DNA from: Oopsacas minuta
Lineage: Eukaryota > Animalia > Porifera
DNA length: 64,000 nucleotides
Assembly: GCA_024704765.1 (NCBI GenBank)
Contig: JAKMXF010000155.1
Span: 640,912-704,911, forward strand
Reading direction: 5' to 3'
Part shown: piece by piece, positions 2,858 through 64,000 of the stretch
Layout of the letters: the number at the start of each line of letters is the position of its first letter
Position numbering within the stretch: the first letter of the stretch is position 1
Notes under the pieces: model-generated
What the model saw: only the letters and a program-made list of their open reading frames with translations
Database searches by the model: none
Told to the model about the DNA's origin: nothing
Translations under genes and position numbers: made by a program

Positions 2858-4171
2858 CAGGGTGCGTTTTAAGTTCTGTCCCATAGTCAAATCCTCATAA
2901 CTTTACTACAATAGATCTTTTACTATTTAAACTTTTATACCAGTTTACTATGATCAATACAATTACATAATCGCACTGATTACTCAATATAACCTCCCTT
3001 GTCATGAATGACACTTGATATCCTGCCAGGTAGGGCCTCAACTGCAGCACGGAGTACATCTTGGGGTATTTTCTCCCACTCTTCTCGCAATTTTCGCTTC
3101 AAAGAGTCTATACTCTTGTGAGATTTAGCACAGACTCTGCTTTCGAGAATGGACCATACCGAATAGTCCATTGGGTTCAGGTCTGGGCTATATGGAGGCC
3201 ATTGCTCTTTCTCAATAAAACATGGAATATTGCTCTGAAGCCAGGTTTGGGTAACATTTGATGTGTGAGCTGGTGCTCCGTCTTGTTGAAATACAAATGA
3301 TCCACCATTAAACATGGTTTGGCTAAGGTTCTTCACTATGGGCTCTAAAATTAAGTCACGATAAGTTGTCGAGTTTATTTTTACGCCTGCTGGCACAAAA
3401 ATTAGTGGCGTCCGACCAACAGCCGATATTCCAGCCCAAACCATTACTGAAAGTGGTTTTTGGACTCGAGGAACGTACTTCAGATCTGGATCAATAGTAG
3501 ATGACTTGTGTGATATAATCCTGTCGTTTTGAGGGTTCAAAGCTTCCTCAATGGTGAAAATCTTTTCGTCGGAGAATACAATTTTTTTAATATCATGATT
3601 TACGTGCCTACGTAATTGTCCTTTACATCTTTGAAGCCTCTTGACCTTTACTTGCTCACTTAGGAAGTGAACTCTCTTTCTTCTGAATGAACGCATGCCT
3701 AAGTTCACTTTCACAATTTTCCGTACTGAAGACTCTGATACTTTGAGTTCCTGAGCCATTTTCCTCATAGAACGCCGTGGGTTCCTACGGATACGTTCCC
3801 GCACCAACCTTTGGAGTGCTGGAGTCGTTACTGAAGGGGGACGACCACTTCTTGCTTTGTCACAAACTTCCCCAGTCTCGTTGTACCTCCGAATCGTACG
3901 ATAGACAAACTTACGTCTATTAGCGGGAATATTGAGCAACTTCAAAATTTCTTTCTGAGTCTTGCCATTTTTAGCTAACTCAATAATAGCTGACCTTTCG
4001 TGTTCCATCAAATGAAAATACTAATACGTGAGAATGGTGTATTGTATAATAGGTATAGGTGCTAGCTAAACAATATAGTAAAAGAATCAACATAGTAGTA
4101 TTAAGGATATGCTTAGAATATAGATAATACAATAAAACATAAAGATGGGACAGAACTTAAAACGCACCCTG
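2858..4171 (-). mobile_element. DD37D (maT) Tc1/mariner element, apparently intact
   Basis: Perfect 27-bp TIRs CAGGGTGCGTTTTAAGTTCTGTCCCAT (2858-2884 and 4145-4171), TA duplication at 2856-57 and 4172-73, and an uninterrupted ORF. Confidence 0.95.
2980..4011 (-). CDS. DD37D maT transposase, 343 aa
   Basis: Full ORF with HTH region (RSGRP), FSDEK and QQDGAPAH...WPPYSPDLNPMD; 37 residues counted between the second and third catalytic Asp. Confidence 0.93.
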   Translation of the reverse strand: MMEHERSAIIELAKNGKTQKEILKLLNIPANRRKFVYRTIRRYNETGEVCDKARSGRPPSVTTPALQRLVRERIRRNPRRSMRKMAQELKVSESSVRKIVKVNLGMRSFRRKRVHFLSEQVKVKRLQRCKGQLRRHVNHDIKKIVFSDEKIFTIEEALNPQNDRIISHKSSTIDPDLKYVPRVQKPLSVMVWAGISAVGRTPLIFVPAGVKINSTTYRDLILEPIVKNLSQTMFNGGSFVFQQDGAPAHTSNVTQTWLQSNIPCFIEKEQWPPYSPDLNPMDYSVWSILESRVCAKSHKSIDSLKRKLREEWEKIPQDVLRAAVEALPGRISSVIHDKGGYIE

Positions 4172-5179
4172 TATGAGCGAAACATGAAACGTGCTCATTC
4201 ACATATTCGTACAGGGAGTCGTTACAAACAGGTGATAATACATCACTTTCCCCATCATCAGACGATTCGTCACTCAATCATACCCAATTTCCTCGAATTC
4301 AGGTAATGAGAAGGCTTTGATCATGTTAGCAGCGTTGTATGTGACGATTTGTAATACCTTATTGGAGATCCCAAAAGTTTCAGTTGTGTCTCTAACTCTT
4401 CAGTGATGGAATCAGCTGTATGAAATCCCCGAGAAGAAGAGTAAGCGAGCATAACATATTCCAAATTCCTGTTAATGATGAAATGGCATATAACACCATA
4501 GTAACTTCGCATAAGGCTCCTGGTCCAAGAATCAATAGCACACATAATTTTTCTTTAGTTTGGTGCTTCCGACCGAGGATTTGGTATTTAGGGTCCACCT
4601 TGTTCATCTTATTTCGAAATCATATACTCTCTACAGTTGAGAGGGCCACAAGTCGCCAACAATGTATGTTGCAACGGCATCTGTCAGTTCTGTTTGCCCT
4701 TGATCTTTTAGACTCTACTTCTTAGGCGTAGTGACCAATGACATTAGAGTTGACTGCTGTCTTTTGACTGTTGTTTTTGCTTGTTCCTCTCAAATACTGC
4801 CTTATGCAGTTGTGCTTTTCTGAAATAAGAAAGATACTTTACTTGACCATTGATCTATTTTGAAATAAGATGTACTCTATTTAATTAATTATTCAACTTA
4901 CTTATCCCAATATGCTAGCATTGTCTGCATATACACCAAAGAGACCTTAATAACAGACCAATACTACCTTGAGATGGAGAAGTAAGTTTCATGCTCCCTT
5001 AGTAGAACCAGATATTTCTGACGGAGATGGCCTGCATTTAGCAGAAAAAATGCCTTCAACGCCTCAGGTACATTGAAAATCTGGAGATCATTAAGTGGAA
5101 CTTTGCCACTATTGTTGTGTTAACAAGTTATTTTCATTTACGTCATATATGAATAACTGGAACTAATTATGAGTGTATA

Positions 5180-5702
5180 CAGTGGTACCAGTCTTGTACG
5201 ACTGCCTGGCGTTCCGACAAATACGGTCGTAAAAGATAGGCGGTCGTTGATGGCAGGTTTGCTATAGCCGAATGTTATTTATCTATACATTAACTATCTA
5301 TCAATTCAATGTGTGCACAAATGTAATACTACAATGTTGCGAGCCAATATATTGAAAATATTCTCATTTTATCTACTAATACTAATTATGTTTGTTTTGT
5401 TTGTATAACCAACTATCCAGTGTGCTAAGAATTTAAATTAATATAAAGGTTGCCATAGTTATTTTGTAAATATTGATTCATTACCGACCAAATATTGGAT
5501 AGGGAATTGTTTTATAGATTTATGGTCGTTGGTTACAGGTAAATTTGACCTGAAACTGCAAAAATCGTGGTCGTTGGTCGCGTTCTACAAATAGTCGCTC
5601 ATCACAGGTCGAAATGTATCGTAAACCATCCGCGCCGGAGAAATCAGTCGTAAAAGGCAGGAAGTCGCTCATGGTAGGGGTCGTACAATACAGGTACCAC
5701 TG
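5180..5702. mobile_element. pogo/Tigger-type MITE (523 bp)
   Basis: 23-bp TIR cagtggtacc(a/t)gt(c/a)ttgtacgac, TA on both sides, no ORF, repeated RGTCG motifs near both ends. Confidence 0.8.
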
Positions 5703-7445
5703 TAATAACTATTTAATTGTATTTATAAGTCTTTTGAGTATTTTAAATACTTTATGAAATTTTTTGAATATAAATACAATAAAATACTTGAAAAAAAGTA
5801 TTCCAATACTCTCAAATACAAATACATATGCATTCGACCCCATGTCTGATCACTTAATTATGAAATTATATCTTTGTGAGTTCCTAATATTTTGTAATAT
5901 TTACCATCAATCAAAATTTAACTATCATAATCAACTAAGGTGTTGTTGAATGTTTTCTATCATTCTCATGGGGCCAGTTGCACTATGAACTAGCTATTAG
6001 TTTCAATTCATAGCTTGATTGATGTACTAAGTGTCAAGCAGAAATTCTTCTCACTGCGCGGCCTAGCATGTAAGTGCGCTAGTAAGGACTATTTGTATTA
6101 AATAGTACTTGCGTGCATCTCTGGGTGGACCTATTCACTGCTGAACTTGGTGACTGACACTAGTGCTTGGATATAGTTTTGTTAAGTCTTAGCCGAATAA
6201 TCTGTCCAAATTACCTTGAATTTTGAATTGTTCCTACTATGAATGATTATAATACCCCAAAAAGAACATCACGAAAATTTCACTCAACAGATGTAGCAGT
6301 GGTTAGGTCGAAAATTCCCCTTATTTATCCCAACAAATGGGTCAAATTATCTGGATTTGAGAATATTTAATTATAACTATAGACGCAAAATATTTTGAAA
6401 ATATCCTAAAAGTTTTGAATACTATTTGAATAATTCATTTCTACCGTCATGAATGATATATATTGTTAGAATTATCCTGATTCTTGATTAGTTCATTAAA
6501 TCGTAAACTTTGGTTCAAGTATGGCAACAGAAATATTTAGGTTGGTGCATTTGTTTGGAACAGAAATTACTTAGCTATTTGAACTTCGAAATTGAATATA
6601 TCATTGTATACATATATTGATCATCCATGGTCCATTAAAGGAATAATATGGTCTCTTGGCCTCTTAACCAGCTAAGCCACTTATCGCTAGTAATCATTGC
6701 ACCGCGTGTTCCTATAAACGTATTCATGTAAATGATCATAATGGTATTTTTTGCCCTAGCAGTTGTCTGTCAATTACCATGTCAAAATCTATTGCCAATG
6801 TATGGGAATTTGAGTTATGTAGATTTCCGTGTATTTGGCCCGAAATTGGAGGTTACTACATTATTTTGCAAATATTGGGTAAGTATATGTCATCCATGGT
6901 CAATACTATACTCTTCTATCCGCGAAATTTTTCATGCTAATTTTTATATTATGTGTACAAGATCCTTAGATCCCATCATACATATACATATTTTGTCACT
7001 CTGAATGTAGTAATGTTCTCTTGCATAGTCTTAAGACTGAATCAATTTCTTCCAAGAATTCTAAATTATAGATCTAAATACAACCTTTGCTTAATTACAT
7101 TATGTACATAAAGACCGGGAGTGATGGCAAATACCAACTATTTACTATTTAGGGCCATAATGTACTAGTAAACTATTTTCCCAATCATTATGCTTTTCCA
7201 TCTAACTTACTCGACCTATTCGTGGTCTTAGTCTTATTGCATCAGATTTCTCGTTATGTACGTATTTTATGATTCCAGTTGTACTTGTAAAATCACATGT
7301 ATTATTAATTTCATGAAAGTCTGGTTCCATTTCTTAATATATGTCCGAACATTAGCTCAAGCTTTGGATTCCAGACATATAGAATAATTTCAACATTTGG
7401 AATCGGCAAATCACTGTCCCCAAGTTGAAATATTGTTGACATTCA

Positions 7446-10435
7446 CAGTGGTTGCGCTAAATCAGGCTGGGATTTTCTTTATGGGGCTGTCATAGCTTGC
7501 TCTTCTTTGAGAAAATATTAATGTGTACTTAAATATCAAAATATTAATTGATTTAAGAAAGTTTCGTTTCTAGTAATATAATTAATAGAAGCAATAACAT
7601 TGTTCACTATTAATAATTCAATACTTATTAAAAGTATTTCCAAAATATTTTTAAGTGAAATGGATGAATGAATAAATCAGCTCAATTGAATCCTCCGATC
7701 TCCAGTTTTATCGAATTTGTCCGCCATCTCGCCCATATCTATTTTGGATGCACGAGTCCTATTGATTGACAAAGTCAGAGGTCTCCCAGTCTATCACCAT
7801 CCATAGTGCTACGAAGATACGTCTTAACACGTTTCATACAAGAGAATGATTAATCATTCTCAGCTGTTGTAACAAGGATGTTACATGCTATCTGGTAGGC
7901 CTTGTAGAGTTCTGTGTAGACCATTTTGTGTGGCTCGATGATGTTAATGACCTCTAATATAGTTTTCAACTGTGGATTAGCCTTTCTATATTGATTGGAG
8001 AACACAGTAAATTCGCTACTTTGTAATTCCTCATTCAGATGATAGTGCTCAATAAAGAACTTCGTTGCATGGATCTTAAGGAAATCATCAGATGTGGGAA
8101 TCAATGATGACATCGCCAAAAGGACAGAACACGTGTCCTTGCTGCAACGTCTATTAAGTTCAGCTATGAAGAGTCTAACAACTGGATCGAATAATCTCAC
8201 TTTGTAGTCCGATTTGATCCACACTCTAGAATTAACAGCATCTTCTTTACAAACTCGACGGCGTTTTACGATCGGCTGCGGTATCGCGTGTTCATCTAAG
8301 AGTGCCTTTGCGGTATCCCAGATTTCATCAAATAAGTCCTCGGCAGAGAGAGACATCTTGAGTGTATCAATGTGATTAACTGCAATGCCAATATCCAAGT
8401 GTTTGTCCTGCATATAGTTTGCCGAATATGAAGTTAGTGTCAGAACTTTTCTGAATAATTGAAGACAGACCACGAAGTGAGTATCAATAAAATTGATGAT
8501 ACCTTGCGCTGCAGCACTTCTATCGGTGTTGGTATCTTCTGCGAAATGCACAGTGGCAGCAATGATTCCCCCTAAAGTATGCGCCACAGCAGAGCAAGCC
8601 TCGGATTGACAGCACCAACGAGTTTTGGATAACAATTTCAATTCACGATGTTGCGCCTCATGTGTACCCAGGACCTTCTGCGTTTTCTCGAAGAAATCAA
8701 GTGGAGCTAAATTTGAGAAGAATGTGTAGAGCTGTTCAATACTCGCATAAATGACACGCTTTGTCGATATTTTGGCGCAAGCAACCACTACTAAGTTGAG
8801 CCTGTGTGCCCACCAATGCACATATAAGGCCATCGGGTATACTTTACTCCTCATAAGTGCTTGTAGACCATGTAGTCGTCCACTCATTGTTGAAGCACCA
8901 TCATTACACTGGGCAGCCATATGATCACGAACGCAGACACCCACAACTGCCAGCACATGAGCCGGCTTTACCACGATGGAATTCGTGTCTAGCCCCTCTG
9001 CTCTGATGAAATTGAAGAAATAGTCGTGCAACTCACCCTCGTAGACATATCTTACACAAACGGATATTTGTTCAATTTCCCCACAATCTCTAGATTCGTC
9101 CGCCAATAAAGAAAAATATTTCTCCGTCATTAGTTCTTCTAGAATTTTCTGGCGTACAGAGTTGGCAAGAATAGACAATATCGAATCCTGGATAGAGTGA
9201 TGAACATACTGAGCATTTCTAGGTCGTTGACTTTCTCTTTGATAACCTTACCGTGGACACCAAACGCAGTAACAATTTCGAGAAAATTCCCTCTCTTTCG
9301 AGATCCGCAGTTGAACTCTGGGCCAATGACTTCACCCATATCATCCACCAATCTTCCCTCACGGTCACCTCTGAGAAGAAGGCCTTGTACAGCACAGAGG
9401 GTGATTACCTGACCTACTATTTTTACATAGTGCCGATTATCTTGAACAGCTTGCATGCTCAGTGCTCCAACTATTACCTCAATGCTTTCTGTACGAAGAT
9501 TACCTTTGTATCCTGACCATTTGAGCATTGAATTAAGATGAGATAACGACTCCTCATGAAGTTTGATACCTTTTCTTCTCCATCGCAATTTTCCAATTGT
9601 CAAACCTAAAGAAGTCCACTTTAACTCATGACCAGCACCAGCTACCTGAAATAACCTACAAGGATAGCAAAAACATGGCATCGATTATTCGAGAATACTC
9701 AAGCCCATGTCTGCCAATGTACTATCCTTTATGAAAGCAACGCATCTGGCCGCCTAACATGGTTTGCTTATAAGTGATTAACTTCGGCTGTCTCAGGTCC
9801 TCAGACAGATTCTGTGCACTTTCTGGAACGTCCTCCGCAGAGACATCCATCGCCGTTTTGCACGTTTAGGATTGTGAGAGTAAGTATCTTCTGGATGTTC
9901 AATTATTACATCTTCCACTTCAAATTCCTGAGTTGCTTCTGGCTGGTCCACTTCAATCTCATCACGCTTTCTCTTCACAAAGGAACCCATTTGAATTTGA
10001 AATGTAGCAAATAAGTATTTGTAACAAAGCTAAAATATTCATTAATAGTGTATAATGTTAATTCCCTTTTATACATCTATTGTGAATCAGCGTCTTAATT
10101 ACAAATTGTTTATTTATTACAGTAGCAATAATTGCCTCATTATTGGTTAGTTTCATCAACTTAGATCTTAGAAGAATTAACAATTTGCGACAAGAAATTC
10201 GTGACACAACAATTCGTTATATTACAATGATTTGGTACCTTCTCCAACTTAGATCTTATCAATAGTAAATAATTTTCCATAATAATCGATTCACAATTGA
10301 GGTATCAATAATTTGCTAATTTAGTATTCGTAATGCTACCAAAAATATTCTTATGGAGCTAGTTAGATAAATTGATAGACCAGCTTAGCTGATGAGGCTA
10401 GAGCCCCATCTTGCCCTATGCCAGCGCCGCCACTG
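7446..10435 (-). mobile_element. hAT element (Tip100/DUF4371 type) with frameshifted transposase
   Basis: Termini cagtggttgcgct and agcgccgccactg; degenerate 8-bp TSD gacattca/cacgttca (6/8). ORFs 9793-9990, 9139-9681 (GNFLEI) and 7850-9178 (FSLLADESRD..EQISVCVRY, HxxAHRLNL, LSKTRW), then SFSCMKRVKTYLRSTM at ~7790-7850. Confidence 0.88.
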
Positions 10436-20427: not shown

Positions 20428-23400
20428 TATTTTCTAGGAAATGCGGGACTTAAATTTGAAAATTAATCGATTTGACCCTTGCGGTTGTATATTTTTGCTG
20501 TGTCACTTTCGCAAAATTGATTGTATATTGTTCGAATTTTCAAATTCCTTTGACTTAGCCCCTTTATATATAATATTTGGTAGTATTAAGTCGCATATGT
20601 GCTGTTGAATGGTGTATTAATCAAATTTCTATGTCTAAGGATACTCAAGTTATCAAGATTTTTTTGCATATTCTATCATACCCTAATATTATTACACACC
20701 CCATTTATTTCCGATTATTTAAAAATTCTATATTCTTAGTAAAATTTGTTATATAATCACCAAACTTAGTATATTTCTTTATCTAGATCCAATTTCATCA
20801 ATAGGTTACCACAAAGAAATTTTACCAACATTCCTAATCCCTTGTTCTTAACTTAGTTACCATTTATCTAGCATGGAATTTATGGCTAATTATAGTATCT
20901 ATATCAATGCTCGATCAAATCATTCATATTATTGCGTGATTATATTCCAAAAATGTATTTATTTTTGAAATGGCAGAAAACACGCGTAGTAAAATATTAC
21001 ATCCTATTTTTGGCTATCCAGGACCCATTCCAGAAAATCAACTTCCAACAAAACTAGATATATATAATCATTCAAGAATGCTTAGAAATGAAGATTCTAA
21101 AACAACTAGAGACGATATAGCGAAAGAATTAACTGAAGTATTAGTGCGTATCTATAATTTAGCTACCATATCCATTATATCAGAGCTCAAAATAAAACAG
21201 TACATCAATTCTGATATTATAGAGAGAGCTAAATACTACGGAAAAAGTATCCAAAACAAGCAACATCCTGACCGTATACTGCCTATTATTTCCGAATTCA
21301 ATGCCTTGTTCGAGGTCTCAAGTTGCAAATGCCTAATTCAGGAAGGTAAATGTCTTTGCTTTCTGAGTAAAAAGATACCACGTCGTGAGTGGCCATTTCT
21401 CTTTGATCAGCGAAACGCTCAAAAATTATTTATATCCAGCTTGGATTGCACGACAACCTCTAAAAATATTGTTAAACAAAAAAGAAAAGAGGCACAGTAT
21501 GAAAAAGAAGAAAGGGAAATGAAGAGATTACATTCAGTTCAACCTTCGCAAGAATTTATAGAATGTGTCTTTGAAGAGTTTGAATCTTTTGACTCAAGCA
21601 CATCTAATAATCACAAGCATACACGTAATCATAATCAATTACGAAATTTAGCCATAATGTGTGATAGATATCAAATTAGCGATCGGGCAGGCGCAGCTAT
21701 AGCTAACGCAGTACTGCAGGATTACGGTATTATCACACAGGAAGAAGGTTGGCAAATTATTGATAGAAACAAACTCCGTAGATCTAGATTCTCTGTGAGA
21801 AAGGTATTGGCTAATGAGGCTCACGAGACTATCAATGAGATATCTGCAATATATTTTGATGGCCGTAATGATCAAACTGGTGTGCTAGTAGAAAGAAAAA
21901 TGGACATTTGTATCAGGAAACTGCAAATGAAGAACATTATACTGTCTTATCTGAAGCGGGGAATCAGTATGTTGCCCATGTAACAGCAAGTTCTGGTAAA
22001 GCCAAAGATATAGCAAGAGAATTGACTGATCTTTGCAGGGAGCGTAATTCAAATTTAATGGCGGTTGGAGCTGATGGAGCTCGTGTTAACACTAGAATCT
22101 ACAATGGGTGTATTAGATTACTTGAACTAGAGTTCACAAACCACTCCACTGGTTTATTTGCCAATTACATTGTAATGAACTTGCATTGAGGCATCGCTTT
22201 CAAACAATAGATGGAAAATCCAGTGGACCCAATTCTTTTAAAGGAGTAATTGGTAAAGAACTTAATTTGTGATTTTACTTGCACCAATTGTAACGTATCA
22301 TCCTTTATGCGGTAAAACTCAACTTATTGATTGCGATATTTTCAAGAATTTAAATAAAGATCAGAAATATCTATATAATATCTGTCATGCAGTTCAGACT
22401 GGTATTTGCTCATCTGAACTACCATCGATGCAACCTGGTCCTATGCATCATGCCAAATGGACAACACTGGCCAACAGATTACTTAGGTCGCACATTTCTA
22501 CGATACATCACGCACCTGAATTATCCCAACTTGTCAATTGTATTGTGAATTATTATGCGCAAGTTTGGTTTAGAATCAAGAGTAACCCGATTTGCACAGA
22601 TGAACCCAAAAATATGTTTTTGCGATATCTTTGCTGCGAGATCTATCGGAGTCTGACCAAGAAGTAATTTGCGATGCGATACAGAGAAACGCATATTTTT
22701 GTCATCCAGAAAATCTCCTGTTATCGATGCTTGCAGATAATGATGAACAAATTAGATAGAAGGCTGTGAAGACTATTTTAGATATCCGAATTAACAGTTC
22801 ATCATTTAGACCGATTGAAATTCGCCCATTTAATCTTCCTTCAAAAAGGTTCACTGCCGAAACATATGTGGATATGATTGATTGGGAGACTTCTTTTATT
22901 ATACAACCGCCTTTTACAAGATACATCTCAAAGGAAGTACTTATTAATTGTGTATGTGCTCCACCAGAAATTCCAGCATATCCATGCTATACACAAGCTG
23001 TTGAAAGAACTATTCAATTAGTCGCTAAAGGTTCGTGTTCAGTAACAGGAGAAGATGCGAGTCATAGATTAATTCTTTTAACCCAACATCAAGAGAAAAT
23101 ATGCCCGCATTTGAGTCAAAGAAAGATTATGCATGTTAAATATACGGTACAACTATAGAATCCGACACCCCAACTTTTTGAATGTAGTCAAAAATCGCTA
23201 TATGCACCGTGGAAGAACTCGTTGTGAGAAGCTGATAGAGCTTTCGAACTCAAAAATCAGATGGAAACTGACGAAGTTACGAAAATCTCCCAAATAAGCC
23301 AAATCCTATGGAGAAAATTGTATTAGACACTATACTGAAATAATGCTGATGAATTCTATACAAACTACCATAGGAATGCACATATAATCAATCTTGCAGT

Positions 23401-24264
23401 TATCAACGCTTGCATCAGTTGATTGATTCTTTTATGAATTTATTAGTTTGCGTAATTTGTAGTTATTACTATTAAGAACAGTCAATTTAAACCTGGTGTA
23501 GCCTGGTTCCCTAACAGGCGAAAACCTGGTCATACCGTATATCTCGAAAACTATAATTCGCATCGCTTAGCTTTAAAAGGAAAACGGTAGGTCTTGGCCT
23601 CATCTAGCCAAAAAAATACCACTTGGACCACATCTAGCTATCCTAACAATAGGTGTTATGCACTATTAATGTTGCCAAATAATCATCAAGTACATTTCAA
23701 AGATATCTTAACCAGGGGTTCATTTGTTGCTTAGAAAAACACATCTTGAACTAAGATGAATGATAAAGACATTACAGTATCGCCAAATTTACTCTGTTGG
23801 TGGTACATATTAGTTGTTTAGTATATCTGTACATGCGGCTTCTTTACTTAATGATTCTAGAGGTTTGTTACTAGCCTCAGAGTCCCCATTACAGCTATAC
23901 AGTAAGTTTCCGGATACAAAGTGGCGTAACATGCTACCATGGGCGTAATTCCCGGGGGGACAGAGGAGGAAGTGTCCCCCCACTTTTGAATAATTTGCGA
24001 TGATGTATGGATTTTGCGATCATTTTCGTACCAAATCACAAGATTTTACAATTCGTCCCATAATTTATGGATCTATGCCCTTGTTTGCAAGCGCCATGCC
24101 TCGCCCATGTTCCAAGTTAACATATTTTGCTCATAATTTACACATTCTTTGCCAAAGTCAGTGTGGTTGTAATGTAGTTTGTGCAAATTGGGTTCCAGCA
24201 CTGATTCCCAATATATTATTCAGATTGGCTAAAGGAATATCCATAGGAAATACGAGCATTGTTA

Positions 24265-26966: not shown

Positions 26967-28794
26967 TTTAGTTGTTAATATATATAGTATTACTTTGTTA
27001 AGAATAGTTACATTATACACTCTTACATCACATACTTGCTAAATGTTAGCATAAGCTATTCTAAGGGATATTGAAACTAGTAAAATGCGTCCATATTGCC
27101 TCGAATAACTGCCCCTAGGGCATAGGGTGGCTTGAAATAAATACTCACCCCAGCTAACATTAGAAGTTATGTAGTGTTGTTAACAGAATACTTGTTATTT
27201 ATTGTGAACGACATACTATTATTAGCTGTGAACAGTAACAATTGCAACTTCCGTTGGACAATAACAGCTATTGCCGGGCTGTTTCTATTCCTGTCGTATT
27301 GATGTCGTGATCCCTGTGTAAGCGCAGGAAGTATTTCAGATCATACATATTTACAAATAACTTTTACACAAACGAGCTGAAGAACTAGTTCAACGAACAG
27401 ATTACTATTTGCAGACAGTTTACATGCAAACGGACCGAAATAATAATACATAAAAAGTCCCACTACAACAATTCAACTTGTGCTTTAACATCAGCCCAGA
27501 CTCAGGAGCAACCATGACACTATCTAATCCCGTTCCTATATCGCTACCGTATAGACTCAAAGGTCCCTAAAACATCAAACGCGTTTGCACCTGGATAACA
27601 ACATGAATACTAAGTTGGATCCAGTCATTTGCAGCTAGAAAATGGGTGAATAAACGCATTAATTATGAAGGTTGTGCCATGCCTCCTTTTGTTACTTCTA
27701 GGGTTTCTGAAGCCAGTGCAATAAAATGACAAGCAAGGGAGCCAGTTCTACTTAGGTTAAATATATAAATTTGGGCTATTTCTAAGCAACAAATGAACCC
27801 CTGGTTAAGATATCTTTGAAATGTACTTGATGATTATTTGGCAACATTAATAGTGCATAACACCTATTGTTAGGATAGCTAGATGTGGTCCAAGTGGTAT
27901 TTTTTGGCTAGATGAGGCCAAGACCTACCGTTTTCCTTTTAAAGCTAAGCGATGCGAATTATAGTTTTCGAGATATACGGTATGACCAGGTTTTCGCCTG
28001 TTAGGGAACCAGGCCACACCAGGTTTAAATTGACTGTTCTTAATAGTAATAACTACAAATTACGCAAACTAATAAATTCATAAAAGAATCAATCAACTGA
28101 CGCAAGCGTTGATAACTGCAAGATTGATTATATGTGCATTCCTATGGTAGTTTGTATAGAATTCATCAGCATTATTTCAGTATAGTGTCTAATACAATTT
28201 TCTCCATAGGATTTGGCTTATTTGGGAGATTTTCGTAACTTCGTCAGTTTCCATCCGATTTTTGAGTTCGAAAGCTCTATCAGCTTCTCACAACGAGTTC
28301 TTCCACGGTGCATATAGCGATTTTTGACTACATTCAAAAAGTTGGGGTGTCGGATTCTATAGTTGTACCAAATATACTTGATATAACATAATTGAATCAT
28401 ATACCACGATAGATAAAAAGCTAATAATTTTCAAATAATCGGAAAAAAGGAGGGTGGGTAATAATATTAGGGTATGATAGAACATGCAAAAAAATCTGGA
28501 TAACTTAAGTATCCTTGGACATAGAAATTCGATTAATACACCATTCAATAGCAAATATGCGACTTACTATTACCAAATAACATATATAAAGGGTCAAATC
28601 AAATGAATTTGAAAATTCGGACAATATACAATCAATTTTGCGAAAGTGACACAGAAAAATGTAAAACCGTAAGGGTCTAACCGAAATATTTTTCAAATTT
28701 AAGTCTCGCATTTTCCTAGAAAATGGCAAAAGCAACTTTTCCCTTAGGTGGAAGTTGAACCGACGATTAATACTTTTCTCGATCCGGCCTAATG

Positions 28795-53101: not shown

Positions 53102-56100
53102 TGGGGCCGGATCGAGAAAAGTATAAATCGTCGGTTCAAATTCTACCCAAGGGAAAAGTTGCCTTTACTCTTTCCTATGAAAATGTGAGACTTAAATTTG
53201 AAAAATATTTCGATTTTGACCCTTGCGGTTTATATTATTGCTGTGCACTTTCGAAAATTGACTCTAAATTGTTGGAATTTTCAAGTACTTTGACTTAGCT
53301 TCTATAAATATATTATTTGGTACTAGTAAGTCACATATTTACTATCGAATGATATATTAAGCTAGTTTCTATTTCCAAGGATCAAGTTATGAATATATTT
53401 TTTCCATATTCTATTATCCCCTAATAATATTAGCCACCCCCTTTTTTCTGAAGATTTTGAAAATGTATTAGCTTTTTTTTTTTATCTAAAGTAGAATATA
53501 GTTCAATTTTGTTATATCAGGTATATTTAATGTGAATAATCTGTATTGAACTAAAATGCGGGCATTTTTTCTCTTGATATTTGGGTTGAAAGAATTAATC
53601 CATGTCTAGCCTCTTCTCCTGTTCCTGAACACGGACTTTTATTGGCTAATTGAATAGTTTTTTCAACAGCTTGTGTATAGCATGGACATGCTGCAATTTC
53701 TAGTGGCGTATGCACACTATAAATTAGTACTCCTTTTAAGATGTATTCTGTCAAGGGCGGTTCTGTGATAAAAGAAGCTACCCAATCAATCATATCCACA
53801 TATGTTTCAGCAGTGAATCTTATTAGGGGAAGTTTAAATGGGGGAAGTCAATCTGTCTTAATGATGAACTGTTAATTCGGATATCTAAAATAGTCTTCAC
53901 AGCCTTTTGTCTAATTTGTTCATCATTATCTGCAAGCATCGATAACAGGAGATTTTCTAGATGACAAAAATATGCGTTTCTCTGTATCACATCGCAAATT
54001 ACTTCTTGGTCAGACTCCGATAACTCTCACAGCAAAGATATCGCAAAAACTTATTTTAGGTCCATCTGTGCAAATCGGGTTACTCTTGATTCTAAACCAA
54101 ACTTGCGCATAATAATTGACAATACAATTGACAATTCGGATAATTCAGGTGTAGGATGCATCGTAGAATGTACGACCTAAGTAATCTGTTGGCCAGTGTT
54201 GTCCATTTGGCATGATGCATAGGACCAGGTTGCATCGATGGTAGTTCAGATGAGCAAATACCAGTCTGAACTGCATGACAGATATTATATAGATATTTCT
54301 GATCTTTATTTAAATTCTTGAAAATATCGCAATCAATAAGTTGAGTTTTACCGCATAAAGGATGATACGTTACAATTGGTGCAAGTAAAATCACAAATTA
54401 AGTTCTTTACCAATTACTCCTTTAAAAGAATTGGGTCCACTGGATTTTCCATCTATTGTTTGAAAGCGATGCCTCAATGCAAGTTCATTACAATGTAATT
54501 GGCAAATAAACCAGTGGAGTGGTTTGTGAACTCTAGTTCAAGTAATCTAATACACCCATTGTAGATTCTAGTGTTAACACGAGCTCCATCAGCTCCAACC
54601 GCCATTAAATTTGAATTACGCTCCCTGCAAAGATCAGTCAATTCTCTTGCTATATCTTTGGCTTTACCAGAACTTGCTGTTACATGGGCAACATACTGAT
54701 TCCCCGCTTCAGATAAGACAGTATAATGTTCTTCATTTGCAGTTTCCTGATACAAATGTCCATTTTTCTTTCTACTAGCACACCAGTTTGATCATTACGG
54801 CCATCAAAATATATTGCAGATATCTCATTGATAGTCTCGTGAGCCTCATTAGCCAATACCTTTCTCACAGAGAATCTAGATCTACGGAGTTTGTTTCTAT
54901 CAATAATTTGCCAACCTTCTTCCTGTGTGATAATACCGTAATCCTGCAGTACTGCGTTAGCTATAGCTGCGCCTGCCCGATCGCTAATTTGATATCTATC
55001 ACACATTATGGCTAAATTTCGTAATTGATTATGATTACGTGTATGCTTGTGATTATTAGATGTGCTTGAGTCAAAAGATTCAAACTCTTCAAAGACACAT
55101 TCTATAAATTCTTGCGTAGGTTGAACAGCGTATAACTCTTCATTTCCCTTTCTTCTCATTCATATTGTGCCTCTTTTCTTTTTTCGTTTAACAATATTTT
55201 TAGAGGTTGTCATGCAATCCAAGCTGTATATAAATAATTTATTGAGCGTTTCGCTGATCAAAGAGAAATGGCTACCCACGGCGTGGTATCTTTAATCGAG
55301 GGAGCAATAACATCTACATTCCTGAATTAGGCATTTGCAACTTGAGACATCGGATGAAACTTTGAATTCAGAAATAATAGGCTGTATACGGTCAGGATGT
55401 TGCTTGTTTTGGATACTTTTCCGTTTTATTTTGCTCTCTCAATATCATCGGAAATGGTGTACTATTTGATTTGAGTCTGATATTGTGGGTATGAATGGCA
55501 AATTATAGATATACACTAATACTTCAGTAAATTCTTATGCTATATATCTCCAGTATATTTAGAATCTTCATTTCTAAGCATTCTTTATTTATTGTATGAA
55601 TCTAGTTTTGTTGGAAGTTGATTTTCTGGAATGGATCCAAGATGACCAAAGACAGGGTGAAATACCTTACTACGCGCATATTCTGTCATATTTAAAAATT
55701 CATAAATTATTGGAATATAATCACTATATAAAATCAATGAATTGATTGAGTATATATTTAGAGACTAATTTTGACCATGAATTCCATGCTAGATAAATTG
55801 TAACTAAATTTATAGCAAGAGATAAGGAATGTTTTAAAATTCCTTTCTGATAATGTATTGCTGAATTTGGAACTAGTTACAGAATTATACTACGTTTGGT
55901 GGTTATATAGCTATTTTCAGTAAGAATTATGCATTTTCAAATATTCGGAAAAGACGGGGGGGTTAATATTATTAGGGTATGATAGAGTATGCGAAAACAA
56001 TATCTTGATAACTTGAGTATCCTTGGAAATGAAATTCGTTTAATACACCATTCGATTGCAAATATGCGACTTACTAGTACCAAATAATATATATACCGAA

Positions 56101-56301: not shown

Positions 56302-59034
56302 CTACTTGTATACATTCTATAATCCATCTATTAGGGAACTTGACTTGATACCATATTTCAATGTTAGAAATAACATAATATTATTGAACGTTGAATGTTA
56401 AAAATATTCAAATCACCGAAATAACGTCATATTCCCGACAGTGGTAACACTACGGGAATTTTGTAATATTATTTTTGAAATTTAAGGTGTTGATATTCTA
56501 TATAGACCACCTAAACAAGCCTAGTTGTAATGGTTACCCGAATACGCCATTGTGACGAATTTGGCTCACTGAAATTTACTGCATTTTGTTTGTATAATGG
56601 CCAACTTAATATACGAATAAATATGTCCCTAGAAGGCTTGGAAGCAAGAATACCAGCTGAAAATGTATTATTATCAACATATCTTGATAAATATATATGA
56701 TAGAGCTTTAGTATGCATTAATTTATATAGGAATATTGTATCAAAGAATGCATTTAAGTTGCCTAAAATATGGTATATCACCATGCGGTTTCGAAAAATC
56801 TATTTTCACCATGTTTTCAGTGTTTTTAACGCTTGACGGTGTATCTAGTGACAAAAGCGAATAAGTAATTTGTATATAAGGGTTGACATGAATGGAATGT
56901 GAACACATTCCTATCTCCCAAGCAAATGTGTTTCTGTTTGTTGAGGCTATAACCAAAAAACTATGAGTCTCATGAATTTATCTCAGTAGTTACTTCATAG
57001 CCAAATTCCTGTCCACTAATATTATTGGTGTTCTATGAGATCTGAATATGTATACTTAGATAGTGACTAGTTAATTATTCGATACCGTATATCAACAAAT
57101 ATGTTGTCATTAAATGAAATCTGACTATATTTGTAAAAGAATTTATGAATTACAATTTGTCCCTTATTCTTAAGCATTTGAACATTATCTCCTTGTTAGT
57201 GTGTTTATAAATTTTCTGATAGATCTAAACCCTCTTCATCTTCCGTGAAAAATTTAATCAATCAGACTACAATTGGCTGACCCACTTGAGTATGGAATTT
57301 GTCCCTCCATGATGTACCGGACCCTCAAAAATTTCAAAACGACCCAAAGGTAGCTGACTGGTGCATCAGAGAGTAGAGATATCAAAGTGTTCTAAACGTT
57401 GAATGTAGCAAAGATATGTGTATCCGACTTTTATTTGCCGATTATTCGATTTCGGTCCGACCTTCCTTTCAATCGTTCTACAAAATTCTAACACCTCGAA
57501 ATTCTGAGTTTCTGACATGATGGAATTAAGAAAACTTTGAAGATTTAAATTTTTGTGCATAGAATTTTATGGAGGTAAGTTCTAACTCAAAAATTGGGAA
57601 CTAACAGCAATTATAAGCATTTCTTCGCTACTTATTCAAGTTTAGAACACATTGATTTCTCTATACTGTTTGATGCCTCGTTCGCTACATTTGGTCGTTT
57701 GAAAATTTTGGAAGCAATCTATATCATGTACGGATCAAATTCGAAACTCAACTGGTTCTTAATTGGTAACCGATTGCTTTAAAATTTTCACAGAGGTTGT
57801 ACGCGGTTGTTATATCTCTCATATACGGCATTAATCTTAACTTTTTGTCCAGCACCCTGGACCCTTCTAAATTCTAACAGTATTTTCCATTTATAACCAT
57901 TACTTAATTTGTCTGTGCCACATGTACTTGGCACAAATTTAATAATGGCCACAACTCAAGTGAAAGATGTACAAATGTTTAGATGAAATGGGCAGTGCTG
58001 GTTTTTGTCAACGGCGATTTAATTCTGTTAGTGATTGGAATATTTTAAATTCGGCTAACCGGGATGTACTTTATGTCGATTGTATTTACTGAACACATGG
58101 TTTCATCCATTACTAAGTACTGATATACCGAATATTACTGTTTTCTTAATCTTATATCAACTTGACATGAATATTTTTGCCAATTCCTATTTCATAGCTC
58201 TAACTTTTATTAGATTACCCTGTCATTTTGCTATGTCCTTAATAGTAGTTGCAATTTACTATTTAACTCGGTATTATAGGCCTATGCTTTTACATCATGT
58301 CACAATTGGCCGGTTAGCCTCTAAGACATTCTAAACTTTACAGTACACTAAAGTGGTTTACCAACCCCAGCCCAGAAATGGGATTTAGTCAGGAGCTGAA
58401 CTTTCTAACAACTTGTATATTCCTATGGTCTCACAGATTTTGTATTAGCTCTATGTGGCTCTGAACATGCGACGGTTGAGCTCGAGCCACCTCTTACCCT
58501 TCAGGTTAGGCGGCTATTGATCTAGTGTAATTCATATGTAGAGATTCCAAATTTATGTCAAAATTCACCGAATACAATGTACTTGTTTATATTCCCTGCC
58601 CTACCAATGTTTACTTTATTCATTGTTAAATTTATTAAATGTATATTTCATAGAAATTCACAATTCGTTTATTTCCCCACAATCTGACACGACAAACATC
58701 TAATATTTTCATATTTGAATTCCAATATTATGTTCTAACTTAACAATATGTGTTTTTGGACACTAAAAGGAACATAGATTTCCAATTTTTCGCAATTGGA
58801 TCATTCAATGAATTAAATAATTTCTATAAATGAAAATTCCTTACTATATAAAATATATATTGCGTAAGGAAATATTCATTTTCAGTAGCCCTGAGTGTCT
58901 GGATAATTGGTGCCATCGATTCTTTATTTTAGTACTACTATTATTGTGGGAAACTCCCTGTTTGTCAGGTTTCAATCCAACTGACATTTGGACTGCTAAT
59001 ATTTTGTGTTATATATTTGAAAATTCTTTTTTAG

Positions 59035-59670
59035 GTTAGCAAGTTGATAATATCAGGTGATATTTATTGTCCCCCTGAAGCTGCCCTATTACTCTCATCT
59101 TATACTGTTCAATCAAAGTTTGGTGATTATGACTCTGAAGTCTACAAGCCTGGGTTTTTGAGGAATGAAAACCTTATTCCTAACAGCGTAATGAAACAAT
59201 TCCTTATGTCTCAAGATATGTGGGAAGATCGTATAGTTGCATGGTATTCAAAAAGACAGGGGTTACTAAGGGATGAAGCTGAGATAGAATATCTTAAGAT
59301 TGCGCAGGATTTAGATATGTATGGTGTTTCATACTTTGAAATTAAAAACAAAAGAGGTACTCATCTATGGTTGGGGGTGGATTCACTTGGACTTTGTATA
59401 TATGAATATTTTGATAAGATGACTCCAAAGATTGCATTCCCCTGGAGTGAGATACGTAATATTTCATTTAATGATAAGAAATTTGTTATCAAACCAATTG
59501 ATAAAAAATCTCCTGATTTTGTTTTTTTTGCTGCTCGTGTCAGAATTAATCGCCAGATTCTGCAATTGTGCATTGGCAATCATGAACTTTTTCTTAGGAA
59601 ACGGGATGTAGACTCTCTGGAGTTGCAGCAAATTAAAATACAAGCCAAAGAAGACCGTTTTACTAAGCAG
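59035..59670 (+). CDS. NF2: Merlin/ERM-family FERM protein, coding exon B (F2-F3 lobes, 212 aa)
   Basis: [71 protein letters not shown] and [13 protein letters not shown]; donor CAG|GTAATT at 59670/59671. The helical and C-terminal exons are not in the window. Confidence 0.93.
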
Positions 59671-60209
59671 GTAATTATTATGCATTATGGTATTGTATTG
59701 TATGATGTACTATGCTTGTATTATTATTATTAAAAATATAGATTTGGGATACTGTCAACTTTATGTGCAAGTTTCCCATATTCCTGGTCATTGTATACAT
59801 CAAAATCTGGCAAATATCCGCCTTTTTGATGTATAGTTTTATAAAATCTGAACCTTTGTTGACAATTGCAATATCAGGTTCCTGTTAACTACTAGATTTG
59901 ACACCATTATCTTTGTAGTGTAAATATTTAGTGGTAGGATATCGCAATGTCTATTATAATCATTTCGTCACTCGAGCTGTAAAACTATCTTTGGACTTGA
60001 ATAGTCCACACTCCTTGTGTGAAATGTTTGAATTTCTTATTCTATATTAATACTCGATGCATTTCCTAATTTATAGTTAATTGAGCGACTAGTAAGAGCT
60101 AGAGATTTGAATTTTGGCTGTGGAATGTGATAGATCTAGAAACTATTTCTCAAAACCTTCTTAGATTGATGTCCACATTTATTAACCTATTAGATGATTT
60201 GCCTTTACA

Positions 60210-60428
60210 CAGGCTGATTAGGATGCAAAAGATTGCTCAATAGATTCTATTTCACAATATCATTAGTGCTAGCAATTTTCAATAAAATAAGAGGTAATAT
60301 AGAAGTCGTGCAATTTAATTCTCGTTATCTACAAAAACTGCCAGGACGTCTACAAATGCACCAACCCCACACCAAGCCAAACGAACCAAGCCATTATAGG
60401 GGTGGCTGTAGGTCTGTCTACGCCCCTG
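60210..60428. mobile_element. hAT-type MITE (219 bp), degenerate left end
   Basis: Right end ctacgcccctg; 8-bp flanks cctttaca/ccttcaca (7/8). Confidence 0.5.
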
Positions 60429-61869
60429 CCTTCACAGGAATTTCGTTGTGCCCCACCATAAATGCCCTGCCCAAAAAAATTCGACGCAACACTCGCATAC
60501 ACCCCAAGTGACTATCTAACAAATCATCATTTCTATCAGTTTTCTGCTATCATTGTATTTTTCATTGTTTGCTAGCATTATCTAGCCTACATATATCCTA
60601 ACAATAACTTGTGGATGTTCGACTAGAGTTCTGTTAGCCGATTTAACAAAAGATTTCCTCATTGCCGTAACTGAAGTCCGACAAAACGTTCCACGACATT
60701 TCGTTCCACTTTTGATCGGTCAATTTTTGTTAATAATTTAACAGGTTTTAAATCGCTAAATAATTGAACTAATTTCTTGTCTGAATACGTTTGGTTCATT
60801 CTAACTTAAATAAAATTGGTTTACCAATTACTTTGCATAATTTGCTAAATAGATTAACTAAGTACTTTGAATAGACTCATTAGATTGTGGTCGAAAATAT
60901 ACATAGTTTAATTTTAGAGGATGACATAAAATTTTGTAGTAGTTATTACAAACTGGTATAGCTTCAAGGGCAGTTGACTAGATCTTATTGCAGTTGTTTC
61001 AATCAATTTTAGCGTCCTGGCGGATTCAATGGGTCCCAAAACCTGTTTTCGGAGCCCGCTTCTTTGAGCTTCTTTGTCCCGGGTGAATTCCAAATTTCCA
61101 ATAGGCATTAACATTAATTTATTTCAGAATTACAGACACCCCATATTTCCGACTTCCAGCCATTTATTAGTACCAAATTATATAGATAACCCCGAAATTA
61201 CGGCCATTTACCTGAATCCAAGGGTGACCGTAATTCAGATGTTCCACTGTATGTGTGTGTGTGTTCACTTGAAATTACTTCCTTGTTCACACCTTTGGAC
61301 TTTGGAGGGGTTAAGACCAGATTTGCCATGTATACTCGCAATGAGATCTAGATGTGCACGGTCATCGAAGTGCTGTGCAGCACGCCCTGTGATGGTTTTG
61401 CCCCTTTGACTAAAAGCATTGTTTATTGATTATATATGTATACCGCCCACCGGAACCACATACGATGCAACAAAGCTGCGTATTGTAATGTTTGCTTTAT
61501 TTATGTTCGCAATATTTATATAACCGAGCGAGTTTCGCTTGCTGTTTACGATCACGCTATTAGGGGAAACTAGGCCTGATTAAGCCAATGTACAGATGGG
61601 CAATTAGAAATGTTTGAAGTTTATATTTCATTGCTTTTGTCGAGATTACTGAGCCAAAGCTCTTTATAAATCCTAGTTTCCCGGTTTAAATATGACTACT
61701 TGTATTATTAATAAGTAACATGCAGGAATTGTAATTAATTTATTAAACACTTATCTAATAACAATAGGAAACTAAACAAAACAAATAGAAGCTAAAAACT
61801 AAACTATGTTCTACTTGGGTGCAGCTACCACATCTCGACCACTGTCCACTTCAATTGGTGGCTGCACCG

Positions 61870-63516
61870 TTAGGAATTTCGTGAAATCCGGAGAGAGGTA
61901 GGAGAGAGGAGATTTGACACATTAGCATGGAGAGAGAGGGAAAGAGAAAGCAAGGGTTCATACGAAAGGAATGGAGATAGTGAAGCGTATGAATGAGCAT
62001 CTGCATGTACCTGATGTGCAGGCTACGGCCTGCTGTGGGATAAAGGTCGGCATCAAGAGGGAAACACGGGACACACACGATAGCTCACAGTGCATAATCG
62101 GTGAGGGTATGCTAACAGCATCAGAGGGTACTGCTGCTAAACTACGTAAACTGGACAGCCTGTAGTGGACGATACAGCGTCAGCGTGCATGTGTATTATC
62201 AGCTCCAGTGCAACCTACCGCCCTAGCAGAGTTGTTTCTACCTGCAGAATACCAGCGGACAGCCAAGGAGGAACAGTTCCTACTCTATAACTCTGGGGAA
62301 GACGATGCACATAGATTCCTCATCTTCGGGACACAACGCACCCTCGGGATGCTACAGCAAAGCAAGATCTGGTTAGCTGATGGCACCTTCAAGACGGCGC
62401 CCCCCTCTTCACCCAAGTGTATGTGGTGCATGGACTCCGAGGAGGGGACGATCCTATAAAGACTGGTAATCTGTTCCCGAGTCTGTTCGTGCTACTGCCC
62501 AACAAGACAGAGGATACCTATCGTAGGATGTGGGAGCAGATCCGCATACTCTGTCCTCTTGCCCAGCCTGAACGGATGCTACTGGACTTTGAGAAGGGCG
62601 CAATTAACAGCTTTGAGCATGTGTGTAGTCAGACTGCACATGGCGCCAGATATTCTATGTGAGGTGGAAGAAGCAGCACTTCACCACTGTGTTAGGCCAC
62701 ACATGCTCAAAGCTGTTAATTGCGCCCTTCTCAAAGTCCAGTAGCATCCGTTCAGGCTGGGCAAGAGGACAGAGTATGCGGATCTGCTCCCACATCCTAC
62801 GATAGGTATCCTCTGTCTTGTTGGGCAGTAGCACGAACAGACTCGGGAACAGATTACCAGTCTTTATAGGATCGTCCCCTCCTCGGAGTCCATGCACCAC
62901 ATACACTTGGGTGAAGAGGGGGGCGCCGTCTTGAAGGTGCCATCAGCTAACCAGATCTTGCTTTGCTGTAGCATCCCGAGGGTGCGTTGTGTCCCGAAGA
63001 TGAGGAATCTATGTGCATCGTCTTCCCCAGAGTTATAGAGTAGGAACTGTTCCTCCTTGGCTGTCCGCTGGTATTCTGCAGGTAGAAACAACTCTGCTAG
63101 GGCGGTAGGTTGCACTGGAGCTGATAATACACATGCACGCTGACGCTGTATCGTCCACTACAGGCTGTCCAGTTTACGTAGTTTAGCAGCAGTACCCTCT
63201 GATGCTGTTAGCATACCCTCACCGATTATGCACTGTGAGCTATCGTGTGTGTCCCGTGTTTCCCTCTTGATGCCGACCTTTATCCCACAGCAGGCCGTAG
63301 CCTGCACATCAGGTACATGCAGATGCTCATTCATACGCTTCACTATCTCCATTCCTTTCGTATGAACCCTTGCTTTACACTTTCCTCTCTTCTCACACTG
63401 CCAATGTGTCATTTCTCCAACTCTCCTGTGCATCAAGTATACCATCCTCCTTCTAATAGCTTTTCTGCTCCTTTGTTTGTACTGATCAGCTGGAAGGAGG
63501 GTTGATCAGGGTCCAT
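61870..63516 (-). pseudogene. Rearranged MULE transposase (FLYWCH + MULE domain)
   Basis: ATG at 63516. THWQCEKRGKCKARVHT (FLYWCH), WLADGTFKTAPP, LLDFEKGAINSF and CFFHLT*NIWRHVQS ending at 62626. A possible C-terminal remnant (LRISRNS*) lies at 61870-61946. Confidence 0.85.
61947..63376. repeat. Long palindrome: two 679-bp arms and a 72-bp spacer
   Basis: 61947-62625 is the reverse complement of 62698-63376. Mirrored identical ORFs appear in the track (62208-62459/62864-63115; 62417/62906 starts). No mismatch seen by eye. Confidence 0.95.
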
Positions 63517-64000
63517 TAGTAAAATGACGAGTTGTTGAAATATGAAATGTAGGAAATAACATTTAGTTGATAATGCAAGCTATAAAAATAATACTGTTAC
63601 AACATTTATATAGAACTACAGGTGACTTTCCATGTTTACTGGCAAACATACAAATTAATTTCGCATCTTCTTCATCAATGGAATTAATTACTACGTATGC
63701 ATTTCTAATATAAATTCGTTACCATTACTATGAATCATCTTGCCTCACCTTGCTAACACAGAACTTCTATGTTTGGGTTTACGATATCAATACTGTAGCA
63801 ATAGATTCTTCAGAAATCATTCATCCCTAATTGATTGATTATATTTGCAATATTACAGAGGCATTCAATAAATACTAATCATACCATCTAAAACTATAGA
63901 TACCTGTGTAAAGTTGGTAATTTTTGCTATGAATGTTCAAAGTAGTCTCCTTTATACGCTACAACTGAATTTAGCCTTTTAATCCAATTTTCAAATGTCT

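Follow-up and report, generated by a model that had tools for sequence, protein, structure and literature searches.

What made the long palindrome near the right-hand end of the window, and does it do anything? The window is the whole stretch of DNA analysed, 64,000 nucleotides of contig JAKMXF010000155.1 of the glass sponge Oopsacas minuta. The palindrome, about 1.4 kb in length, consists of transposase sequence of a Mutator-like element (MULE). A preliminary description took it for a recent inverted duplication in a dead element, and for a possible animal counterpart of the maize silencing locus Mu killer. Very probably, the palindrome forms the core of a single non-autonomous copy, old and dead, that belongs to a mobile fold-back MULE family in O. 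minuta. Judging from the sequences of related loci, this layout was not made at the window locus; it arose once, in an ancestor, and transposition spread it.

A base-by-base mirror walk from the centre gives a perfect inverted repeat of 679 bp with no mismatches (61947-62625 against 62698-63376) and a spacer of 72 nt between the arms (62626-62697). Slightly wider arms, 61933-62625 and 62698-63390, are returned by a repeat search. The arms, their coordinates and the 72-bp loop of ordinary transposase sequence had been described correctly, as both procedures and translation agree, and the structure is indeed an inverted copy of the 5' coding part in place of the central and catalytic MULE region. 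For comparison, we used nine related loci of O. minuta (L002 and others below), reached via annotated proteins irrespective of their structure. The palindrome and its borders consist of the following parts.

61900-61946, plus strand: remnant of the outer end of the ancestral left arm, decayed to about 80% similarity with the FLYWCH-coding part of the right arm; 3 nt are deleted and Cys/Trp codons lost
61947-62625, plus strand: left arm, inverted copy of the transposase 5' coding sequence; its gene model LOD99_1564 ends in a junction-spanning peptide
62618-62625, plus strand: CATGTGTG, an 8-nt repeat at the putative deletion point of a longer palindrome, from comparison with L002, L003 and L004
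62626-62697, minus strand: spacer (loop), continuation of the right-arm transposase gene, reading ...CCFFHLT (WPNTVVKCCFFHLT), TAG at 62655-62657, then NIWRHVQSDY
62698-63376, minus strand: right arm, original sense copy of the 5' transposase sequence, from the second half of FLYWCH through the linker into the beginning of DDE/MULE; gene model LOD99_1565
63377-63516, minus strand: right-type (R) start of the open reading frame (ORF), ATG at 63516-63514, translated as MDPDQPSF..., with a single frameshift in the first half of FLYWCH; aligns with the intact FLYWCH starts of L004 and L002

The MULE domain (PF10551, E 6.4e-9, above the Pfam cut-off) was found in 62658-62906 on the minus strand, with a FLYWCH finger upstream of it (PF04500, E 4.6e-7, in 63161-63445, minus strand). 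Since the Pfam matches are on the minus strand, the right arm on this strand is the authentic sense copy and the spacer its continuation. Family contigs run leftwards beyond 62626 as ordinary transposase sequence, with loose ends at 62619 and 62630. The transposase gene is truncated and broken by two stops and two frameshifts. Two of these lesions occur in both arms, as already noted in the preliminary description. The first is an in-frame TAG (62163-62165 and 63158-63160) where family contigs have AAG; among family contigs and annotated proteins, no other copy with the TAG at 62163 was seen. The second is a run of six C (62400-62405 and 62918-62923), one C shorter than in family contigs and thus a 1-nt deletion. 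The remaining stop is the TAG of the spacer, and the remaining frameshift falls into the first half of FLYWCH. A search with the middle piece of the broken gene led to two gene models, P0005 (LOD99_1564) and P0001 (LOD99_1565), which are the two arms. None of ten ORFs from this region matched an entry of the protein collection exactly, the collection being one of annotated gene models.

All nine related loci are fold-backs. L002 is 88% identical to the window over 60736-63868, well beyond the arms. The window unit can be aligned over its full length with L002 and with L007 (87-89% identity), and all three have the same left-type (L) segment, arms, R segment and outer junction. At L002, L003, L004 and L007 the similarity ends with common terminal motifs, and the flanks beyond are unrelated. 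L004 and protein P0013 have the C-run frameshift, too, the frameshifted tail PPSSP.C.WCMDSEE being common to all. As the same layout and outer junction recur at L002 and L007, and the frameshift recurs in other copies, both layout and frameshift are inherited, and the earlier claim of a recent duplication at this locus, later than inactivation, does not hold. The presence of the frameshifted tail in L004 and P0013 further means that the window copy was already dead at insertion.

The outer junction of the left arm had been interpreted as GA-rich homeology that served a template switch. The homeology is real. Alignment of the fold-back layout places the start of left/right homology near 61900, and the segment 61900-61946 scores 26 against the reverse complement of 63377-63428, compared to 12.8 +/- 2.1 in shuffles; the anchored global score is 16 compared to -3.6 +/- 4.1, with a maximum of 11 in 1000 shuffles. 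Chance GA-richness as the source of this 50-bp homeology is ruled out by the shuffles and by conservation in sister copies. The template switch, however, is not supported, as the stretch is the decayed end of the ancestral arm: the window and L002 have the identical 3-nt deletion and identical substitutions in 61900-61946. The equivalent segments of L003 and L007 are still right-arm-like, and L007 has private substitutions of its own there. Since the outer junction and derived changes are common to these copies, the inverted duplication predates the split of copies that are now 11-13% apart.

If the layout is that old, the perfect identity of the arms needs an explanation. In the related loci the arms are as follows.

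L002: arms of 971 nt, 100% identical, spacer of 172 nt
L003: arms of 1557 nt, 100% identical, spacer of 2045 nt; a different kind, built of A-type ends (the A region is described below)
L004: arms of 1789 nt, 100% identical, spacer of 206 nt; the entire element is palindromic with two 5' ends, the true Mu killer layout
L005: arms of 929 nt, 100% identical
L010: arms of 749 nt, 100% identical
L007: arms of 647 nt, 99.8% identical; the centre is a gap of N
L009: arms 98.8% alike
L008: arms 97.5% alike

Across loci, the arms vary from 647 to 1789 nt and the spacers from 72 to 2045 nt. Different copies are only 79-91% identical to each other (that is, they differ by 9-21%), whereas the arms within a copy are 97.5-100% identical. 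About 60-70 differences between the arms of the window copy would be expected without homogenisation, yet the arms show not one. Its terminal repeats, which do not adjoin the arms, have no more than 90% identity. As the layout is inherited by copies that are 87-89% alike, the arm identity probably reflects copying between the arms, not youth. The arms may be kept alike within each copy by gene conversion or by mismatch repair in snap-back DNA, and arm-to-arm copying would extend until it is blocked by a diverged stretch with indels. The identical stretch does not end at the same point in all copies: the left arms of L007 and L003 stay right-arm-like for about 30 nt further out, which is what conversion tracts should show.

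Several other long inverted repeats were observed. In L003, the perfect inverted repeat (3750-5306 and 7352-8908) extends about 1 kb past the MULE terminal repeat into apparent flanking DNA; a larger inverted duplication may be the cause, or else an outer element that escaped recognition, or the assembly. The window contains further long inverted repeats with 99-100% identity: one is a pair of arms of about 600 nt, 23140-23737 and 27779-28375, in a unit of about 5.2 kb, the other a pair of 969-nt copies in opposite orientation, 21528-22496 and 54167-55135, which are 31.7 kb apart.

The fold-back junction of the window is most simply explained by a central deletion of 768 bp, as suggested by sequence comparison. 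Aligned with L002, the window lacks 768 bp around the centre (L002 5809-6576); this missing piece is made up of 333 nt of left-arm sequence, the spacer and 263 nt of right-arm sequence. In the relatives, CATGTGTG occurs at the end of the left-arm remainder and again, in L004 and L003, directly before the sequence that opens the spacer. A deletion between these two direct repeats would have removed the centre of a longer palindrome and left the asymmetric 72-nt spacer. It may have preceded or followed insertion at the window locus, as no other copy with the 72-nt centre of the window was found among the annotated proteins. For the centre alone, a de novo fold-back at the same 8 nt, acting as inverted microhomology, is an alternative, but it is unnecessary because the outer junction is shared with other loci.

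The palindrome is enclosed in a discrete unit comprising 60673-63854 and about 90 nt past a nested insertion and scaffold gap, ending at window-equivalent position 65379. On the plus strand, this unit reads: 3' region (A), L segment, inverted copy of the transposase 5' part, spacer, original 5' part (on the minus strand), leader (U) and right terminal repeat. By the time of its insertion downstream of an exon of a host ERM gene, considered below, the copy already carried a frameshift. The parts outside the palindrome are listed here.

60663-60672, unstranded: probable target site duplication of 10 bp, left-hand copy (TGCCGTAACT); its right-hand counterpart, TGCGGAAACT, is at window-equivalent 65380-65389 in L001, with 8 of 10 bases matching
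60673-60764, plus strand: left terminal inverted repeat, starting GAAGTCCGAC...; its partner is at window-equivalent 65291-65379, past the scaffold gap
60765-61805, plus strand: A region, about 1 kb, non-coding, 3' region of the minus-strand transposase gene, multi-copy; 87-89% identical to L002, L003 and L007
61806-61899, plus strand: L segment, ATGTTCTACTTGGG..., with no counterpart at the right arm; common to the window, L002, L003 and L007, and unrelated to the right-type 5' region
63517-63854, minus strand: U region, 5' leader separating the ORF from the right terminal repeat, which it directly adjoins in L002, L004 and L007
63855-64000, unstranded: start of the nested element, with terminal inverted repeat CAGAGGCATTCAATA... 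and TA duplication; runs into a 1186-N scaffold gap that begins at window-equivalent 64001

The terminal inverted repeats of the unit, about 90 nt each, are 90% alike over 84 nt, and the only sub-repeats in the termini are short ones of the ACATTTCG.TCCAC type. The features of a MULE are a transposase domain, found here by Pfam, and terminal inverted repeats, which bound the unit at multiple loci. A target site duplication of about 9-10 bp is also characteristic; the candidate duplication matches at 8 of 10 positions in the window and at L007, and L002 and L004 have none that is recognisable. The nested element has inverted ends and spans 63855-65290 (L001 11885-13320), most of which is the 1186-N gap. 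It interrupts the right end of the unit, and L002 and L007 are uninterrupted at this site.

Four public sequencing runs were found for O. minuta, all from one sample and none of small RNA. Single-copy DNA contigs of runs X1 and X3 end at 60702, that is 60673 + 29, as expected for 31-mers at the border of a repeat unit. Beyond this position, summed depth exceeds single-copy depth by factors of tens to thousands. The summed DNA depth over the arms is from about 250 times (X2, X3) to 1500 times (X1) the flanking single-copy depth. In 61932-63497, X1 exceeds X2 and X3 about sixfold in its ratio of repeat to single-copy depth; this run is apparently a library of another type, and the copy numbers derived from it are unreliable. 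For the A region, the runs give a summed depth of about 40-225 times single-copy depth. Judging by depth, the family has hundreds of copies, and the window itself contains no further one.

Some observations concern the ends of the unit and its relatives. The L segment also encodes the N-terminus of protein P0003. In L003, the first 545 nt of the A region follow the end of the transposase ORF in inverted orientation. An ORF of 106-111 amino acids in the A region (window 61074-61409, plus strand; L003 5060-5380) is kept between copies and contains ...NSKFPI.ININLFQNYRH.... The left terminal repeat of L002 carries a hAT-type insertion (1767-3939; CAGGG...CCCTG ends, 8-bp duplication ATTTAACA) with genes encoding FAM200/ZBED5-like and hAT dimerisation domains. 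Proteins P0167, P0172, P0178, P0180 and P0181 are relatives at 39-47% identity, and may represent the same transposase lineage in other animals.

Several points weigh against an inherited, mobile fold-back copy. Firstly, the nine comparison loci are a non-random sample, as they were reached via annotated proteins, and no intact autonomous copy was identified. Secondly, among the annotated proteins searched, the 72-nt centre and junction peptide of the window copy were found only in LOD99_1564 itself. Thirdly, target site duplications are not recognisable at L002 and L004. Fourthly, the right end of the unit is linked to the rest only across the 1186-N gap, yet the two ends of the nested element flank this gap. 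Finally, two points concern the data. Bulge collapse by SPAdes and polishing by Pilon may slightly inflate arm identity, although they could not hide a divergence of 10%; and the family consensus swamps the alleles of the window copy in the Logan contig tables, where only the longest records are listed and no junction-spanning reads are readable.

Of the other explanations, the one that survives best concerns function, and it can sit on top of the fold-back-copy explanation. Fold-back copies as a class might be a built-in source of hairpin RNA, so that any copy in a transcribed place, the window copy behind its expressed ERM exon being an example, would deliver long double-stranded RNA (dsRNA) of the transposase 5' part; we consider this unlikely. 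If true, the family would carry its own 'Mu killer' wherever it jumps, with arm homogenisation keeping the duplex perfect, and would be an animal case of a transposon family limiting itself via a heritable mobile hairpin. That the window locus in particular has a real silencing role is rather improbable. Here the transcript of ERM or of another gene would read through the palindrome, and the 679-bp hairpin would be diced into small interfering RNAs (siRNAs) that silence the MULE family in trans. The structure is certainly that of a hairpin source: 1430 nt as RNA are predicted to fold into a single stem with -1498 kcal/mol. If any transcript crosses the copy, its RNA would fold into a 679-bp duplex that could feed the siRNA pathway, as a by-product common to dozens or hundreds of sister copies. 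However, the window locus is one of very many fold-back copies and nothing singles it out, and a silencer role, if real, is not special to it. The Piwi and Argonaute programme genes are reported to be conserved in O. minuta (PMC5381599), and hairpin RNAs and endo-siRNAs mapping to transposable elements were reported in the demosponge Amphimedon (PMC6211395).

Transcription through the palindrome depends on its neighbourhood, where one host feature is of interest.

59033-59671, plus strand: exon of a host ERM/merlin-like gene (FERM_M/FERM_C), expressed and spliced at both ends according to the RNA-like run X4; not part of the element

Run X4 behaves as RNA: in this flank it covers only 58974-59669, at a depth of 1000-2360, and its loose ends at 59033 and 59671 are typical of splicing. 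The palindrome lies 2.3 kb downstream of the used donor, on the same strand. The host context of the preliminary description therefore stands as far as the exon is expressed, its donor at 59671 is spliced onward and the element lies downstream on the same strand. The next merlin exon was to have proved the intron. The RNA contig continues for 255 nt past donor 59671, and the 30 nt that come first are absent from the 59 kb upstream and from the 20 kb downstream; the sequence covered was the window, L001 and L006, up to window-equivalent 79962. The downstream stretch to this position contains transposon genes only. A very long intron would be compatible with this, and an intronic position of the palindrome is possible; however, with more than 20 kb, such an intron would exceed the genome mean of 341 bp (PMC10280926) about 60-fold, and a scaffold gap follows at 64001. 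The annotated ERM gene model is truncated, with 231 amino acids and matches to PF00373/PF09380. The ERM gene may be split by the transposon cluster or by a mis-join at the scaffold gap.

The RNA data count against the silencer reading. Over the unique stretch 59844-60539, between the ERM exon and the element, the depth of X4 is 0 and there is no RNA contig. On the other hand, X4 contains family RNA contigs for the A region, the L segment, the arms and U. However, the listed contigs on the arms carry 7-10% other letters, and hence derive from other copies. The reference T at 62047 is seemingly in excess in X4; positions 62090-62092 are all non-reference, so this contig need not be the window copy.

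An artefact is very unlikely. In this case the palindrome, or its centre and the perfect identity of its arms, would result from the assembly method or from chimeric long reads. The O. minuta genome, 15.4% of which is DNA transposons, was assembled from Illumina and PacBio reads by hybrid SPAdes, with SSPACE scaffolding and Pilon polishing (PMC10280926). Palindromes are hard to sequence, arms are exactly 100% identical in 6 of 10 loci, a gap replaces the centre of L007 and another gap follows the window element; nor could the Logan tables show junction reads of the window copy itself. However, some loci retain arm mismatches (97.5-99.8% identity), so arms are not always collapsed, and an 8-nt repeat is too short to create false edges at k >= 21. 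Window-specific alleles at several sites have a depth of about 54-99 in X2 and X3, or 1-3 times the single-copy depth of 28-53, which weakly fits two arms. Chimeras of either kind, from missed PacBio adapters or from amplification, are unlikely. The former show symmetry and continue up to the end of the read, but the arms of the window stop at defined points inside the element and are flanked on both sides by proper element ends; as regards the latter, the genome paper makes no mention of whole-genome amplification (PMC10280926). The gap in the centre of L007 (6590-7994) comprises 1405 N; some of these palindromes seem to have been impassable for the assembler.

The last alternative, a recent locus-specific duplication by template switching during gap repair of an already dead MULE, is extremely doubtful: the identical arms with their shared stop and frameshift, the TAG at 62163 unseen elsewhere, and the pair CATGTGTG/CACACATG at the inner junction, which could equally be inverted microhomology for a fold-back, would all fit it, but it appears to be largely refuted by the outer junction, which L002, L003 and L007 share at only 87-89% identity together with the L segment and derived changes beside it, as well as by the inherited C-run frameshift and the near-identical arms of every related fold-back locus.

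If the palindrome is thus a member of an old fold-back family, the window locus alone is ordinary, one more dead repeat copy, and the family is more interesting. A MULE in an early-branching animal transposes with the 5' region of its transposase gene as an internal palindrome. With centres eroded by microhomology deletions, the family forms a natural series for the study of arm-to-arm conversion and palindrome instability. It follows that 'Mu killer-like' structures can be common and inherited, not just rare accidents. If small RNAs from the fold-back copies exist, the family would provide a test case for self-inflicted silencing by RNA interference in sponges. As regards annotation, the gene models LOD99_1564 and LOD99_1565 each represent one arm of a dead transposon, and the adjoining ERM gene model is truncated.

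The closest known structure is Mu killer of maize, reportedly characterised by Slotkin et al. in 2003/2005. It is a MULE derivative that contains about 1.3 kb of the mudrA 5' part twice in inverted orientation, with the central part missing (PMC3440606). Transcription from a flanking gene runs through it and can give rise to a long hairpin RNA, and silencing of MuDR was shown genetically (PMC3440606). The window unit likewise has an inverted duplication of the transposase 5' part with the centre lost. However, both ends of Mu killer are transposase-side terminal inverted repeats, whereas only the right end of the window unit is of this type, the left one consisting of the A type and L segment; sister copy L004 does have two transposase-side ends. 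Another difference is that Mu killer is a single non-mobile locus, whereas the window layout occurs in a transposing many-copy family with arms kept alike. Mu killer has a flanking promoter; the ERM exon of the window is expressed and spliced onward, the unique flank has no RNA contig, and the next exon is not within 20 kb.

Foldback-type elements of the animal Mutator superfamily (FB of Drosophila, Tm1 of root-knot nematodes, the Phantom subclass) are characterised by long inverted arms that vary in length, by 9-bp target duplications, and by numerous non-autonomous copies alongside those with a transposase (PMC3169594). The sponge elements likewise are of Mutator ancestry, consist mostly of long arms of variable length and include many non-autonomous copies. 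The difference is in the nature of the arms. In FB and Tm1 they are terminal, composite non-coding repeats, whereas in the window they are internal, consist of transposase coding sequence, and lie between terminal repeats of about 90 nt and a pair of sub-terminal regions that do not resemble each other.

Long inverted arms are known to evolve in concert in transposons with long terminal inverted repeats, such as Galileo, and arm-to-arm conversion occurs in the palindromes of sex chromosomes. The sponge family resembles these systems, as the arms within a copy are far closer than copies are to each other and their identity ends at a diverged boundary. The difference is that in the sponge family we only infer the mechanism, and part of the perfect identity could stem from the assembly method. 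Finally, sources of siRNA from dsRNA in animals include the hairpin RNA loci of Drosophila and read-through of the Tc1 terminal repeats in C. elegans. The transposon inverted repeat in the window is predicted to be similar to these in that it would yield long dsRNA if transcribed.

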